Shown here: one piece after another, positions 1-7,396 of the stretch | How positions within the stretch are numbered: position 1 is the first letter of the stretch | Layout: the number at the start of each line of letters is the position of its first letter | DNA from: Neoechinorhynchus agilis | Taxonomy: Eukaryota; Animalia; Acanthocephala | DNA length: 7,396 bases | NCBI GenBank assembly: GCA_051530055.1 | Contig: JBMGUZ010000094.1 | Coordinates: 1-7,396, forward strand | Reading direction: 5' to 3' | Notes under the pieces: model-generated | What the model was told of the DNA's origin: nothing | Database searches by the model: none | The model's input: the letters and a program-made list of their open reading frames with translations, nothing else | Program-made: the position numbers and the translations under genes

Positions 1-1221
1 TTATTCTTTTCTAGGTGATTAAGAAGGCGGCATTTAGGCTTACTGATTTATGACTCCCATTTTGGTTACGGTGAAGAAACGAGCGCATTATAGGCATTGA
101 AATTCTTATATTTTTCCGGGTTGATGATTTTTTTCTACGTGTGTTAAGAAGACCTATTTAATTCTTTGAATCTTACCAAACTGTGTTTTGTATTGCATTT
201 CTGTTAAGTTTTGAAGGTAAAGTGTACGACGTATAAAACTGTTGGATGATGTGTTCTAACGAACTCAACGGTCGTTCGGCCGATAATCTGTCTAAAACGA
301 CAAATATATTTTTCCACATCATGGATTAGAACCTTGCCATTTCAAGATTACGATTCCTTACTGGTTGTTGCCTGCAATTTGAACCGAAGTCACCTTCAAA
401 TAGGTCCCTACAAAGGAAATTCCTCCAATCATTCAATAAAGGTTATTTTATTGTTGTAGTAATCACATCGTGAAAAAATTGATTCTTATTCCATTTCTGG
501 TCGTCGTTGGCGATACAAGCCTCCTTCTCAAACGTTCATCCTTTTCTTTAAATCCAAGATAGTTAACAAGATTGACAGGTTTTATAAGGAACGATAAAAG
601 TCAAAGAACGTTATAGTATCTTATCCAGAAAAGAGCTTAGGTTTTCCTGTAAAATCTCACGTCGTCTTTTTGTGGCTTTCTAAGGATTCTATAGAAAGAT
701 GATTATCGATTAGTATTGTCAATAAGTTCGACTCATTTAAACCGATTAGATGTTTTATTTAATAAAAAAGAAGAAAACATGTCCTTTAGACTGCAAGATA
801 AACAAGAGTTCTTTAAATGAGAACGAAAATAACTCAAAAAACAAGTTTAGGTCCCTTGTGATTGAATCAGTGTCGAAATATACATTCGTCTCTTTAACTC
901 GACAAGCGACCTCGTTAATAACAATATCTATAATCATTATACCTCAATAAAAAATATCGACTGATATAGAATCTCAATAACAGCTCGTCAACAAAGTGAT
1001 AATCGACCAAAAAACCCATTTTTAACCGACGAAGCTACATATTTCCTTAGCCGTCGAGAACACTCAGTTGCGACTGACGTGAACGCTCAAATATTTCTTC
1101 TTTTCAGCCAGACGATAGCGAACGACGAAAAAAGGCAGTTTTCAAAGAGAAATCCAGGACGTAGCAATGAGCGAAGCATATTAACTCAATAGGTTTCTCC
1201 AATGGTTGATTAATAGACTCT

Positions 1222-1280
1222 TTACGATCACCTTAAATTCAATACGTGACGAAAAGAAGATAAAACTCACCATTTCAATT
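1222..1280. repeat. Possible eroded relic of the satellite monomer upstream of the array
   Basis: ttacgatcacc..aattcaata (1222-1244) matches the monomer end ttacgatcaccacaacttcaattcaata. It is followed by gataaaac and tcaccatttcaatt, which resemble arm motifs. Confidence 0.3.
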
Positions 1281-2994
1281 CACATCGACATTTCTGCAAT
1301 CCACGAGGGCGACAGAAATGCGATTCTTTCAGCTGAAAGGCAAAAAACCGTTAAACGTTGACGCTTTTTGTTTTTTACAATTCTAAGGGCCCCGACGGAT
1401 TTTCTCTCGACGATACCGGAATTGGAGATGAGGTTATAATAATCTCCGGATAAAACGTATTTTATTGAAATATTTTGCGAACTCGATTAGATTAATTTTT
1501 AATGACAGATAAACGAGGTTTCCACGAGAAATATTTCATTTCATTAAATTGCGTTTTATCTTTGCCGGGGTATTACGATCACCGTAACTTCAATTCCATA
1601 ACCCCTACGGATTTTCTCTCGACGATACCGGAATTGGAGATGAGGTGATCATAATCCCGTCCCCGGATAAAGCGTATTTTATTGAAATATTTTGCGAAGT
1701 CGATTGGATTAATTTTTAATGACAGATAAACGAGGTTTCCACAAGAAATATTTCATTTCATTAAAATGCGTTTTATCTTTGCCGGGGTATTATGATCTCA
1801 ACAACTTCAATTCAATAATCCAGGCGGATTTTCTCTCGACGATACCGGAATTGGAGATGAGGTGATAATAATCTCCGGATAAAACGTATTTCATTGAAAT
1901 ATTTTGGAAGTCGATTGGATTAATTTGTAATGGCAGATAAACGAGGATTCCACAAGAAATGTTTCATTTCATTAAAATCCGTTTTATCTGGGCCGGGGTA
2001 TTACGATCACCACAACTTCAATTCAATAATCCCGACGGATTTTCTCTCGACGATACCGGAATTGGAGATGAGGTGATAATAATCTCCGGATAAAGCGTAT
2101 TTTATTGAAATATTTTGCGAAGTCGATTAGATTAATTTCTAATGACAGATAAACGAGGTTTCCACGAGAAATATTTCATTTCATTAAATTGCGTTTTATC
2201 TTTCCCGGGGTATTACGATCACCACAACTTCAATTCAATAATCCCGACGGATTTTCTCTCGACGATACCGGAATTGGAGATGAGGTGATCATAATCCCCC
2301 CGGATAAAACGTATTTTATTGAAATATTTTGCGAAGTCGATTAGATTAATTTGTAATGAGAGATAAACGAGGATTCCACAAGAAATATTTCATTTCATTA
2401 AAATCCGTTTTATCTAAGCCGGGTTATTATGATCACCGCAATTTAAACTCTATCATCGCGACGGATTTTCTCTCGACGATACCGAAATTGGAGATGAGGT
2501 GATAATAATCTCCGGATAAAACGTATTTTATTGAAATATTTTGCGAAGTCGATTGGATTAATTTATAATGACAGATAAACGAGGATTCCACAAGAAATGT
2601 TTCATTTCATTAAAATCCGTTTTATCTGGGCTGGGGTATTACGATCACCACAACTTCAATTCAATAATCCCGACGGATTTTCTCTCGACGATACCGGAAT
2701 TGGAAATGAGGTGATCATAATCCCCCCCGGATAAAGCGTATTTTATTGAAATATTTTGCGAAGTCGATTGGATTAATTTTTAATGACAGATAAACGAGGT
2801 TTCCACAAGAAATATTTCATTTCATTAAAATGCGTTTTATCTGGGCCGGGGGATTACGATCACCACAACTTCAATTTAATAATCCCGGCGGATTTTCTCT
2901 CGACGATACCGGAATTGGAAATGAGGTGATCATAATCTCCGGATAAAACGTATTTTATTTAAATATTTTGCGAAGTCGATTAGATTAATTTGTA

Positions 2995-3141
2995 CTCGCT
3001 AGCAGTACAACGGGACAATGCTGCCAGCGTGATGGCGGCGGTCGAGGAAGGACAAAAGCTGGAATTCGGCGGGAAGTGGTGAGTGTGTTAATTGTCGAGA
3101 AATGAAGATTGATTGGTTGTCGAAATGCTCCGGAAATATCT
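2995..3141 (+). mobile_element. 147-bp insert in monomer 8; probable extremely 5'-truncated CRE-like (RLE) non-LTR retrotransposon 3' end
   Basis: Non-satellite, more GC-rich sequence flanked by ATTTGTA at 2988-2994 and 3142-3148; the unit is 154 bp longer than 212. Frame 2996-3082 reads SLAVQRDNAASVMAAVEEGQKLEFGGKW*, resembling the recalled CRE-clade C-terminal consensus ISIAIQRGNAAS(I/V)LG. A 59-nt tail follows, with no poly(A). Confidence 0.65.
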
Positions 3142-3702
3142 ATTTGTAATGACAGATAAACGAGGTTTCCACGAGAAATATTTCATTTCATTAAATTTCG
3201 TTTTATCTGGGCCGGGGGATTAAGATCACAACAACTTCAATTCAATAATCGCGACGGATTTTGTCTCGACGAAACCGGAATTGGAGATGAGGTGATAATA
3301 ATCTCCGGATAAAACGTATTTTATTGAAATATTTTGCGAAGTCGATTGGATTAATTTTTAATGACAGATAAACGAGGTTTCCACAAGAAGTGTTTCATTT
3401 CATTAAAATCCGTTTTATCTGGGCCGGGGTATTACGATCACCACAACTTCAATTCAATAATCCCGACGGATTTTCTCTCGACGATACCGGAATTGGAGAT
3501 GAGGTGATCATAATCCCCGGATAAAGCGTATTTTATTGAAATATTTTGCGAAGTCGATTGGATTAATTTTTAATGACAGATAAACGAGGTTTCCACAAGA
3601 AATATTTCATTTCATTAAAATGCGTTTTATCTGGGCCGGGGGATTACGATCACCACAACTTCAATTCAATAATCCCGACGGATTTTCTCTCGACGATACC
3701 GG

Positions 3703-3878
3703 AATTGGAGATGAGGTGATCATAATCTCCGGATAAAACGTATTTTATTGAAATATTTTGCGAAGTCGATTGGATTAATTTTTAATGACAGATAAACGAG
3801 GTTTCCACAAGAAATATTTCATTTCATTAAAATGCGTTTTATCTGGGCCGGGGTATTACGATCACCACAACTTCAATT
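3703..3878. repeat. Imperfect inverted repeat inside each monomer (example: monomer 11)
   Basis: Left AATTGGAGATGAGGTGATCATAAT matches the reverse complement of right ATTACGATCACCACAACTTCAATT at 20/24. Left GATAAAACGTATTTTATTGAAAT matches the reverse complement of right ATTTCATTAAAATGCGTTTTATC at 21/23. A mini-hairpin ATTAA-TTT-TTAAT (3774-3786) lies near the centre. A ~36-bp non-palindromic linker separates monomers. Confidence 0.9.
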
Positions 3879-5058
3879 CAATAATCCCGACGGATTTTCT
3901 CTCGACGATACCGGAATTGGAGATGAGGTGATCATAATCTCCGGATAAAACGTATTTTATTGAAATATTTTGCGAAGTCGATTGGATTAATTTTTAATGA
4001 CAGATAAACGAGGTTTCCACAAGAAATATTTCATTTCATTAAAATGCGTTTTATCTGGGCCGGGGTATTACGATCACCACAACTTCAATTCAATAATCCC
4101 GACGGATTTTCTCTCGACGATACCGGAATTGGAGATGAGGTGATAATAATCTCCGGATAAAAGTATTTTATTGAAATATTTTGCGAAGTCGATTAGATTA
4201 ATTTTTAATGACAGATAAACGAGGTTTCCACAAGAAATATTTCATTTCATTAAAATGCGTTTTATCTGGGCCGGGGTATTATGATCACCACAACTTCAAT
4301 TCAATAATCCCGACGGATTTTCTCTCGACGATACCGGAATTGGAGATGAGGTGATAATAATCTCCGGATAAAACGTATTTTATTGAAATATTTTGCGAAG
4401 TCGATTAGATTAATTTGTAATGACAGATAAACGAGGATTCCACAAGAAATATTTCATTTCATTAAAATCCGTTTTATCTAAGCCGGGTTATTACGATCAC
4501 CACAACTTCAATTCTATAATCCCGACGGATTTTCTCTCGACGATACCGAAATTGGAGATGAGGTGATAATAATCTCCGGATAAAACGTATTTTATTGAAA
4601 TATTTTGCGAAGTCGATTGGATTAATTTTTAATGACAGATAAACGAGGTTTCCACAAGAAGTGTTTCATTTCATTAAAATCCGTTTTATCTGGGCCGGGG
4701 TATTACGATCACCACAACTTCAATTCAATAATCCCGACGGATTTTCTCTCGACGATACCGGAATTGGAAATGAGGTGATCATAATCCCCCCCGGATAAAG
4801 CGTATTTTATTGAAATATTTTGCGAAGTCGATTGGATTAATTTTTAATGACAGATAAACGAGGTTTCCACAAGAAATATTTCATTTCATTAAAATGCGTT
4901 TTATCTGGGCCGGGGGATTACGATCACCACAACTTCAATTTAATAATCCCGGCGGATTTTCTCTCGACGATACCGGAATTGGAAATGAGGTGATCATAAT
5001 CTCCGGATAAAACGTATTTTATTTAAATATTTTGCGAAGTCGATTAGATTAATTTGTA

Positions 5059-5205
5059 CTCGCTAGCAGTACAACGGGACAATGCTGCCAGCGTGATGGC
5101 GGCGGTCGAGGAAGGACAAAAGCTGGAATTCGGCGGGAAGTGGTGAGTGTGTTAATTGTCGAGAAATGAAGATTGATTGGTTGTCGAAATGCTCCGGAAA
5201 TATCT
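5059..5205 (+). mobile_element. Second, identical copy of the 147-bp CRE-like insert (monomer 17)
   Basis: Identical to 2995-3141 at an offset of 2064 bp, with ATTTGTA at 5052-5058 and 5206-5212. It lies within an identical duplicated block, so it reflects duplication of one insertion. Confidence 0.65.
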
Positions 5206-5371
5206 ATTTGTAATGACAGATAAACGAGGTTTCCACGAGAAATATTTCATTTCATTAAATTTCGTTTTATCTGGGCCGGGGGATTAAGATCACAACAACT
5301 TCAATTCAATAATCGCGACGGATTTTGTCTCGACGAAACCGGAATCGGAGATGAGGTGATAATAATCTCCG

Positions 5372-5436
5372 GATAAGACATTTTAATTAAGTGAAATATT
5401 TCTCGTGGAAACCTCGTTTATCAGTCGTTGTAAATT
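5372..5436 (-). repeat. Inverted, diverged fragment of the satellite monomer at the right edge of the array
   Basis: 5392-5422 tgaaatatttctcgtggaaacctcgtttatc is the exact reverse complement of monomer sequence gataaacgaggtttccacgagaaatatttca. Flanks gataagacattttaattaag and agtcgttgtaaatt align with mismatches to the reverse complement of the monomer right arm and apex. Confidence 0.9.
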
Positions 5437-5696
5437 CGACGCCAGCACCACCGACGACACCCATGCCATTTTATTTTCTTTGGCGTCGAGACATTCGAGT
5501 CGTTTGGTACCGCAGAACTTGGTCAAACAATTGTCCAAGAGATTGATACGAATCACTGGCGATCTTAGATCAGGAGCATTCCTCCTACAAAACATAAGTC
5601 TAACTCTACAATGGGAGGGAACGCTGAATCCGTCCTTTCGACCGTTACACCAGGACGGCAGCTGCGGTGTGAATGATTATAAGCTCTTCTTGTGTT
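5437..5696 (+). pseudogene. Degenerate 3' end of a CRE-like RLE non-LTR retrotransposon ORF (two compensating frameshifts)
   Basis: Frame from 5467 reads HFIFFGVETFESFGTA. It shifts to NLVKQLSKRLIRITGDLRSGAFLLQNISLTLQ (to 5611), then shifts back to GNAESVLSTVTPGRQLRCE* (5617-5676). This matches the recalled CRE-clade C-terminus of the form F(V/I)PFGVETLGPWG..A..L.K.LSKRL...TGD.RAG.FL.QRISIAIQRGNAAS(I/V)LGT. The exact element boundaries are approximate. Confidence 0.75.
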
Positions 5697-5973
5697 ATTA
5701 AAAAATTAATCATTATTTGCACCTATAAATGTAAGATTTCGATTTTTACGGAATTGTGATCGGCCATTACGCTATAAAAAAGGTTCAAGTCTCCCGTCAC
5801 TAATCATTCGTTCAATATTCTATGAGTACTCAAAGGCAAACATCAAAAGAAGAGATCCCATACGCATCAATGATGGTCTTTTATAAGGTAAAATAAATTC
5901 ACTAATGACTGTTAAACTTTTTACCAATTTCACCTAGCGATATTCACTCAGAAAATTGATTTATATTGAAAAT

Positions 5974-6001
5974 TTTCGGCCTTTTCGTTGGCCTTCTTCA
6001 G
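5974..6001 (-). ncRNA. Mirror copy of the hammerhead-like core in the left arm of the inverted repeat
   Basis: Exact reverse complement of 6029-6056. Confidence 0.4.
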
Positions 6002-6028
6002 TCAGATCTAGAACTTAAAAAGGAATGA

Positions 6029-6056
6029 CTGAAGAAGGCCAACGAAAAGGCCGAAA
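6029..6056 (+). ncRNA. Hammerhead-ribozyme-like core (possibly degenerate)
   Basis: CTGAAGA-A-GGCC-aacgaaaa-GGCC-GAAA fits the CUGANGA box, a 4-bp GC helix II and the GAAA box. Convincing helices I and III were not found. Confidence 0.4.
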
Positions 6057-6704
6057 ATTTTCAATATAAATCAATTTTCTGAGTGAATATCGCTAGGTGA
6101 AATTGAAACAATAATGATTAATTTCTTTACAAACTTTTTACCACAAGAACTCAAGGAATCAACTAAAAACGTCCAATGGGAAATAAATCAGGAAAAATTT
6201 AAGCTTCGTTAAAAACGTACAATCGAATGAAATTTTTTAGGGATACTTATCTTAGAATCCCTATTTAAGTTGGTCAAATCCACTATCGCCGATGACTCTC
6301 AAAGAAAAAGGGGAAGAAATATGTCGTTGAAGGGAAGAGGAATCTCGGTCTCCCCCTGGGAAGAATTTTAAGGATCCGGATGGATTCGTACAAAACTCAT
6401 AACCGCGAATGGTTCAGGGTATTAAGTTATTTTATTCGATTCTCTGATGAACGAGATATCGGTTATCATCCGTGAAAAGACCTTCACTTCAACACACAAT
6501 AAATGTGATCAGCTATTGAGACTTAAAAGATAAAATAGGAATAGTTATAATAATACAGAAAAGGACCCATGTATCTTTAGGTCCTCATGAACACTCGAAT
6601 TTACAGAATAATTATTTCGGTACTTCTTTAAGATTCGTGCAGAGATTTGAAGAATTTTTTTATAAGTTGACTTTGGTTTGTTAGTTGTTTTTATGTTGCT
6701 CCAG

Positions 6705-6839
6705 AATCTCAGACAGATTCCGAATCAAAAGCTTCCTTAAAGCGATTCCGAGCGATTGTCGTTAAAATAAACAATATGACCAGAGCTGACAACGATGCTC
6801 AACATTACGGAGTGCGAAGAGCTACAAAATCTGTGAAAG
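6705..6839 (+). CDS. Candidate internal coding exon, product unknown
   Basis: T-rich acceptor ...tttttatgttgctccAG (ends 6704) and donor AAG|GTAACA (6840). The 135 nt are open in a phase 1-1 frame: SQTDSESKASLKRFRAIVVKINNMTRADNDAQHYGVRRATKSVK. A 66-nt intron-like stretch 6840-6905 follows, ending ttaacctcttcAG. No homology recognised. Confidence 0.3.
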
Positions 6840-7396
6840 GTAACAAAATAGAATTTCGATTTCGGTCTTTTTTGATTGTTTATCATAAAAAATTAACCTC
6901 TTCAGAGTTTATTTGGTAAATAAACTCCAATCATTGTTTGTTAGAAAATAAAGCGGCAGAAATATCACCAAAACATGCCTTAGACAGCAATTAAAGTGGT
7001 TTCCAATCAAGTGAAATACTCGAAAAACAAGTTTATAAAAGAAAATAACAATAATGCACGTGAAAAAGATTAGTGAAAAATGCGTAATAGCGAGAAAGAA
7101 TCAGGAAATGGAAGAAAAGATGACGACATTTCAAGGAAATTCTGCCTCTCGCGATGTAAAGAGGAAACGCAGCGAGTGTGGTCGCGATCACTGAGGGGAG
7201 AGCGATGCCTCTTCTTCGTGGACGATGGTGATTGTTGAAACGATTTGTTGTGGGTGTGTAAATGAAGGAGTTGCTTTCAAAAAAAATTACACGAAACATT
7301 TCATTGTGCGAGCACAGGAATTGATTTGAGTTAAACGGAGAAGCTTTTGGAAAAGTTGATTGAAGAAAACGCCTCCATAAAGATTGATTTGAACTG

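Follow-up and report, generated by a model that had tools for sequence, protein, structure and literature searches.

Insertions of two RLE-type LINE families at the A/T-rich apex of a fold-back satellite in the acanthocephalan Neoechinorhynchus agilis

The 7,396-nucleotide (nt) stretch of the Neoechinorhynchus agilis genome analysed here (assembly GCA_051530055.1, contig JBMGUZ010000094.1, positions 1 to 7,396; the window) carries an array of a 212-bp fold-back satellite into which two different retrotransposon fragments, insert A and fragment B, have inserted at the same place, the A/T-only tip, or apex, of the hairpin formed by the monomer. Our evidence supports the identification of both fragments as 3′ ends of long interspersed nuclear elements (LINEs) of the restriction-like endonuclease (RLE) type. 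They belong to distinct families and lie in opposite orientations relative to the monomer, and nine related copies at other N. agilis loci lie outside the satellite. We infer that non-specific RLE LINEs with a preference for A/T runs struck the same soft spot twice, a reading to which we assign a probability of roughly 0.6.

The array runs from 1391 to ~5370 on the plus strand, as supported by Tandem Repeats Finder (91 to 96% matches), repeat families, monomer alignment, and DNA folding; its ~18 monomers are all in direct orientation, with higher-order structure. As single-stranded DNA, the monomer forms one long hairpin (minimum free energy, −34.1 kcal/mol; z, −4.95; 0 of 200 shuffles equally stable), whose innermost stem-loop, ATTAA-TTT-TTAAT, is the apex. 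At 13 nt, the apex (ATTAATTTTTAAT) also exceeds every other pure A/T run in the monomer, and all-A/T 10-nt windows occur only there. The left part of the array (1391 to 2991) shows a 426-bp (dimer) period in which monomers of a CTCCGG variant and of a C-run variant (CCCCCCCGG) alternate. Degenerate monomer-like sequence precedes the well-formed array at 1222 to 1390 (e.g., TTACGATCACCTTAAATTCAAT, 1222 to 1243); the left satellite edge is therefore older or eroded. We found no convincing coding sequence in the flanks (1 to 1390 and 5712 to 7396), look-ups of the exact products of window ORFs showed none on record, and a metagenome scan with a conserved satellite 21-mer yielded three chance matches, without extended similarity.

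Insert A (2995 to 3141, plus strand; 147 bp) is a strongly 5′-truncated LINE copy, recognized by monomer alignment and translation. The host monomer is broken after ...GATTAGATTAATTTGTA and resumes 147 bp later with ATTTGTAATGACAG...; a perfect 7-bp target-site duplication, ATTTGTA, lies on the plus strand at 2988 to 2994 and 3142 to 3148. Removal of the insert and one ATTTGTA leaves a 212-bp monomer that is 89 to 94% identical to the others, and the apex of this restored empty site, TTAATTTGTAATGACAG, is the same as that of the uninterrupted monomer at 4402 to 4425. The insertion and its duplication are real. An earlier, sequence-only reading of the window had placed them correctly but counted one copy too few: an identical second insert A lies at 5059 to 5205 (plus strand; ATTTGTA at 5052 to 5058 and 5206 to 5212). 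The two copies represent a single insertion event, because ~1 kb of the array, insert A included, is duplicated on the plus strand: in an offset identity scan, 2297 to 3320 and 4361 to 5384 are ~99 to 100% identical at an offset of 2064 bp. This duplicate could reflect recent array expansion or an assembly artefact, and the second insert A copy is possibly the product of such an artefact rather than of later segmental duplication.

Positions 2996 to 3079 of insert A encode the last 28 amino acids (aa) of an open reading frame (ORF), SLAVQRDNAASVMAAVEEGQKLEFGGKW, followed by a stop codon (3080 to 3082) and a 33-nt 3′ untranslated region (UTR) that is common to its relatives and ends ...GATTGATTG (~3115). 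At the nucleotide level, the insert is 96.7% identical to positions 6989 to 7108 of locus L005 (over 120 nt) and 95.9% identical to positions 10231 to 10351 of locus L004 (over 121 nt), both from the same assembly. The terminal 26 to 27 nt of insert A (GGTTGTCGAAATGCTCCGGAAATATCT; 3115 to 3141, and again at 5179 to 5205) are absent from the 3′ ends of these 96 to 97% identical relatives. They resemble neither the satellite (an equally good score arose in 105 of 500 shuffles) nor any fetched locus; possible origins are a longer variant of the 3′ UTR, a short 3′ transduction, and untemplated or filler sequence.

Fragment B (5437 to ~5696, plus strand; true 3′ end between 5692 and 5696) represents a second RLE-LINE family in decayed form and was delimited by translation, phmmer, and tblastn. 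It reads from the end of the RLE domain (FIFFGVET..., FIFFGVETFESFGTAE; frame 3, from ~5467) into NLVKQLSKRLIRITGDLRSGAFLLQNISLTLQ (5516 to 5611; frame 1) and then GGNAESVLSTVTPGRQLRCE (5614 to 5673; frame 3), with a stop codon at 5674 to 5676 and at least two frameshifts, and is 75.5% identical to L005 10819 to 11006 over 192 nt. At its 5′ end, positions 5440 to 5467 match the ORF start of the longest A-family copy (L005a, 4193 to 4220) at 25 of 28 nt, with the peptide PPTTPMP in common, and the sequence then jumps straight to the RLE end. This single short, compositionally biased (Pro/Thr-rich) match suggests that B may be non-autonomous, derived by an internal deletion that joined parent 5′ and 3′ ends, as in the R2 SIDEs; we found no second copy with B's junction between 5′ start and RLE end.

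Both flanks of B are satellite. Upstream lies an inverted partial monomer (5371 to 5436, minus strand; right arm plus right half-loop), detected by inverted repeats and local alignments, which is 88% identical to the array and terminates in ...GTCGTTGTAAATT, that is, at the apex; the switch from direct to inverted orientation falls at ~5370, within the self-complementary arm (CCGGATAA). Downstream lies a remnant of an inverted monomer apex (5693 to 5711, minus strand), TGTTATTAAAAAATTAATC, identified by local alignment and background frequency: (TGTT)ATTAAAAAATTAATC (5693/5697 to 5711) differs from the inverted apex, TGTCATTAAAAATTAATC, by one mismatch and one indel. The sequence-only reading had itself raised the possibility that this stretch is chance AT-rich similarity. 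It is not: with ≤1 error allowed, the 14-mer of the remnant turns up a single time when both strands of 83 kb of non-satellite background are searched, and we estimate the probability of a chance match adjoining B at ~1e-4. With an inverted partial monomer upstream and an apex remnant downstream, B therefore sits inside an inverted monomer. The flanks overlap by 10 to 14 bp (direct-monomer apex positions 4 to 13 or 4 to 17), and the remnant is likely the downstream copy of a decayed target duplication of that length. The satellite ends abruptly at 5711/5712, 4 to 5 nt past this putative duplication, and unrelated DNA follows; the break may mark a deletion, a further insertion at this spot, or the original edge of the array. 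As a source of the inverted flank, inversion of the B-containing segment was also considered; we rejected it because it needs an extra 30-nt deletion.

The duplication of insert A occupies apex positions 5 to 11, inside the interval defined for B, so that the two events lie within ~3 bp of each other. The placement of both junctions in one ~7- to 10-bp window, in opposite orientations, had been proposed from the sequence and holds, as does the proposal of two separate events: A and B show no nucleotide similarity by blastn, and our data support independent insertions, at the same apex, by two families that their sequences mark as distinct but related. Their peptides do align, as had been claimed (~59% aa identity over 32 residues; E, 2e-7), but only when a frameshift is allowed for in B.

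For protein searches, we used a B peptide joined across its frameshifts. A full HMMER (phmmer) scan with it returned 55 proteins at E ≤ 1e-3, the top two of which (P0001 and P0019) are bacterial repeat proteins that we set aside as spurious. The remaining matches have a common C-terminus, ...TGDxRxGxFLxQRISLAxQRGNAAS(V/I)LGT..., which in the long ones follows a reverse transcriptase (RT) domain (RVT_1, carried by P0037 and P0042, among others) and a CCHC...RPDG...WDAT...FVPFGVET region. The insert A tail is 89% identical over 28 aa to the tails of KAL7667367.1 (P0005) and P0028; P0005 and P0011 are annotated as N. agilis, and the gene for P0028 lies on a contig of the N. agilis assembly. Among 40 aligned homologues, C63, C65, D139, K169, and E188 never vary, and H75, C79, and D123 are retained in ≥90%. 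The AlphaFold model of homologue P0178 (predicted local distance difference test [pLDDT], 93.3; predicted template modelling score [pTM], 0.90) matches R2Tg, R2Pm, and R2Bm over their C-terminal part, where the endonuclease lies (E, 9e-6 to 5e-5; probability, 1.0; TM-score, 0.43 to 0.58 on the query). Of this region, insert A corresponds to part of the last helix, and B to the strand bearing the conserved Glu plus the two final helices.

These results support the view that A and B are 3′ ends of non-LTR retrotransposons of R2-type architecture, each encoding the C-terminal tail of the ORF. Both also bear the signature of target-primed reverse transcription: A is a 147-bp 3′ end within a perfect 7-bp duplication, and B lies within a decayed one of 10 to 14 bp. 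A word-indexed protein search with the B peptide gave no matches, Pfam returned nothing meaningful for the short A and B peptides, and PF26138, listed for one homologue, was not reproduced by hmmscan. The sequence-only reading had called the fragments CRE-like RLE elements; the RLE part of this identification is supported, but the CRE label is not: the window has no spliced-leader (SL) gene, and the matching solved structures are those of R2. In the window, Rfam gave no SL RNA or other RNA gene at E ≤ 1 (sub-threshold hairpin matches only), and no CRE-specific similarity was found.

Elsewhere in N. agilis, we examined five loci (L001 to L005; 80 kb) from the same assembly, reached through annotated gene models. 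They contain nine related copies: seven of the A family (82 to 97% nucleotide identity to insert A), one B-like, and one of a third family. The longest, L005a (L005 ~4190 to 7108), is colinear from a Pro/Thr-rich start through a CxxC zinc-finger-like motif, RT (motifs GGIRPIAV...YLDD; RVT_1 E, 1.3e-12), CCHC, and RPDG/WDATC/FVPFGVET to the tail. Its only sequence matches in PDB are R2 proteins (best E, 1.9e-4), and it shows a weak colinear motif match to R2Bm residues 934 to 999 (the CCHC-KPD region). A protein search with the N. agilis RLE region found no further N. agilis gene models; the relatives that it returned, from Lepidoptera, Collembola, and others, are ~50% identical.

Two of these loci show features of their own. 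Positions 1 to 11276 of L005 (contig JBMGUZ010000035.1, an unplaced 28-kb contig) hold four RLE-LINE copies of at least two families within 11 kb (310 to 1789, ~4190 to 7108, 10322 to 10471, and 10775 to 11006), which suggests a transposon-rich region or nested insertions. On L002 (10003 to 10130), a 19-nt inverted repeat (GGCGAATTGTTACACACTC / GAGTGTGTCACAATTCGCC) brackets ~90 nt directly upstream of a 5′-truncated A-family copy and may be a small miniature inverted-repeat transposable element (MITE).

A blastn search of a monomer dimer against the 80 kb of L001 to L005 gave a single 61-nt match, at 75%, which places all nine related copies outside the satellite. Their 3′ flanks differ from copy to copy and contain no common target sequence. 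In the subfamily of insert A, the common 3′ UTR ends ...GAAGATTGATT(G) and is followed by TAATACATTTATCG in L005a, by AATTTCAAAAATC in L004, and, after the 26 to 27 extra nt, by ATTTGTAATGAC in the window; a second A-family subfamily ends ~12 nt past the stop codon, where the flanks are again unrelated. Over their first 12 nt, six 3′ flanks are 75 to 100% A/T, versus 60% for the background, and the third-family copy also adjoins a long A/T run.

On the reading that we prefer, these are dispersed elements whose endonuclease or priming step would favour A/T-rich runs. As no other pure A/T run in the monomer is as long, the apex would be the likeliest landing place within the satellite, in either orientation. 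Each family would have inserted once, by target-primed reverse transcription that left only the element's 3′ end. Insert A is presumably young, given its perfect 7-bp duplication, intact tail frame, and 97% identity to relatives; it would later have been copied with ~1 kb of array. Fragment B, in the inverted terminal monomer, is presumably old, given its frameshifts, the decay of its duplication, and the 12% divergence of a flank. Under uniform insertion, the post-hoc probability of two events within ~3 bp is roughly 0.03.

Several points weigh against this explanation. The coincidence consists of only two events, and a value of ~0.03 implies a site preference of some kind, for A/T runs or otherwise. 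Candidate target duplications of the other copies amount to short, non-significant shared words, which do not fix the exact nick sites; the boundaries of two flanks (L001 and L005b) are uncertain, as the elements end in A-rich sequence. Finally, the nine-copy sample is small and comes from five loci reached through gene models on a repeat-masked assembly, in which satellite-internal copies are under-sampled.

Of the alternatives, pure coincidence survives best, although we consider it unlikely. Both elements would insert essentially at random, the two nearby insertions being due to chance; with only two events, a post-hoc value of this size is not extreme for a pair picked by eye in a genome scan, but the consistent A/T richness of the six flanks argues for at least a compositional preference.

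Real preferential targeting, in which the RLE recognizes the apex sequence or an extruded hairpin or cruciform tip, the satellite serves as a safe harbour, and the other copies are off-target or older, appears quite improbable to us. It would account for the arrival of two independent families in the same ~10-bp window in opposite orientations, as fits a dyad-symmetric site; the monomer folds stably, with the apex as its terminal loop; and many RLE clades are target specific, for microsatellites among other sites, with YURE occasionally found in a U2-derived satellite (PMC4640811). However, all nine sampled relatives are located outside the satellite, with no target motif in common, the 2 of ~18 window monomers that are occupied both trace to a single event, and the A/T-run explanation accounts for the same facts. 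Dispersed copies with dissimilar 3′ flanks are an outcome that the sequence-only reading had itself named as refuting its proposed satellite-targeting system; on this small sample, that system is not supported. We rate no higher the structure-directed form of this idea, in which a Holliday-junction-resolvase-like endonuclease would nick the extruded hairpin or cruciform tip, so that unrelated families would converge on the apex in both orientations and find a safe harbour in the satellite. Should the apex prove a genuine target, these elements would provide a rare example of LINE homing to a palindromic satellite through shape and not sequence, as well as a handle on site choice by RLE endonucleases.

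Least probable of all is that B never inserted into a monomer, the right array end being a fold-back inversion, a mis-join, or collapsed or expanded repeats, and the insert A duplicate likewise an artefact: the direct/inverted switch within a self-complementary arm, the end of the satellite 4 to 5 nt beyond the putative B duplication, the ~100% identity of the 2064-bp duplicate, and the listing of Flye, an assembler for long error-prone reads, among the references of the N. agilis genome paper (PMC12690905) would all suit such an artefact, but the two B flanks read as one inverted monomer that spans the apex and overlap in the manner typical of target duplication, the apex remnant is statistically real, and the 12% divergence of the inverted piece marks it as old genomic sequence and not a recent mis-join.

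Beyond the array, the window contains an inverted repeat with perfect 80-nt arms around a 21-nt spacer (5925 to 6105; DNA fold, −96 kcal/mol; z, −25). Parts of its arms recur at L004 9592 to 9646, L001 421 to 468, and L002 3247 to 3359, which makes the structure a member of a dispersed hairpin or MITE-like repeat family; against Rfam, it gave sub-threshold miRNA-like matches only.

The repeat content of acanthocephalans is almost unstudied, and both the RLE-type LINE families and the 212-bp fold-back satellite are undescribed: the N. agilis genome paper names neither (PMC12690905). As the evidence stands, the case also illustrates how a compositional soft spot can mimic site specificity.

Among known systems, the N. 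agilis elements have the architecture of R2 (R2Bm and R2Tg). L005a is a single ORF that runs from an N-terminal zinc-finger-like motif through RT and a CCHC knuckle to a PD-(D/E)xK restriction-like endonuclease at the C-terminus; the homologue's modelled C-terminal region superposes on R2 proteins; and copies are 5′ truncated, with short target duplications and no poly(A). Unlike R2, which occupies one site in 28S rDNA, the N. agilis elements are dispersed; sequence identity to R2 in the structural alignments is low (14 to 20%), and their tail forms a conserved ...TGDxRxGxFLxQRISLAxQRGNAAS... helix that also occurs in many elements of Lepidoptera, Collembola, and other invertebrates. The CRE clade (CRE1/2, SLACS, and CZAR) also consists of RLE-type LINEs with RT followed by RLE, but it targets trypanosomatid SL RNA genes, whereas here the host is a metazoan and the targets are satellite and unrelated DNA.

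In behaviour, the dispersed and non-specific N. agilis copies resemble HERO and BLAG. Four RLE clades are mostly target specific, while HERO includes many non-specific families, some of which prefer microsatellites (PMC4640811); the cockroach BLAG elements are non-site-specific R2-like elements placed randomly in the genome (PMC7650587). Other RLE LINEs land in tandem repeats, namely, Dong in (TAA)n, Togen in (TG)n, and YURE in the U2_sat satellite (PMC4640811), but most of their copies lie in the target repeat, in contrast to 0 of 9 other copies here. The closest functional analogue of the apex soft spot may be EhLINE1/EhSINE1 of Entamoeba histolytica, of unrelated host and lineage: these RLE-type elements are untargeted, and their insertion hot spots combine a short nicking motif with local DNA structure in an A+T-rich genome (PMC1635306).

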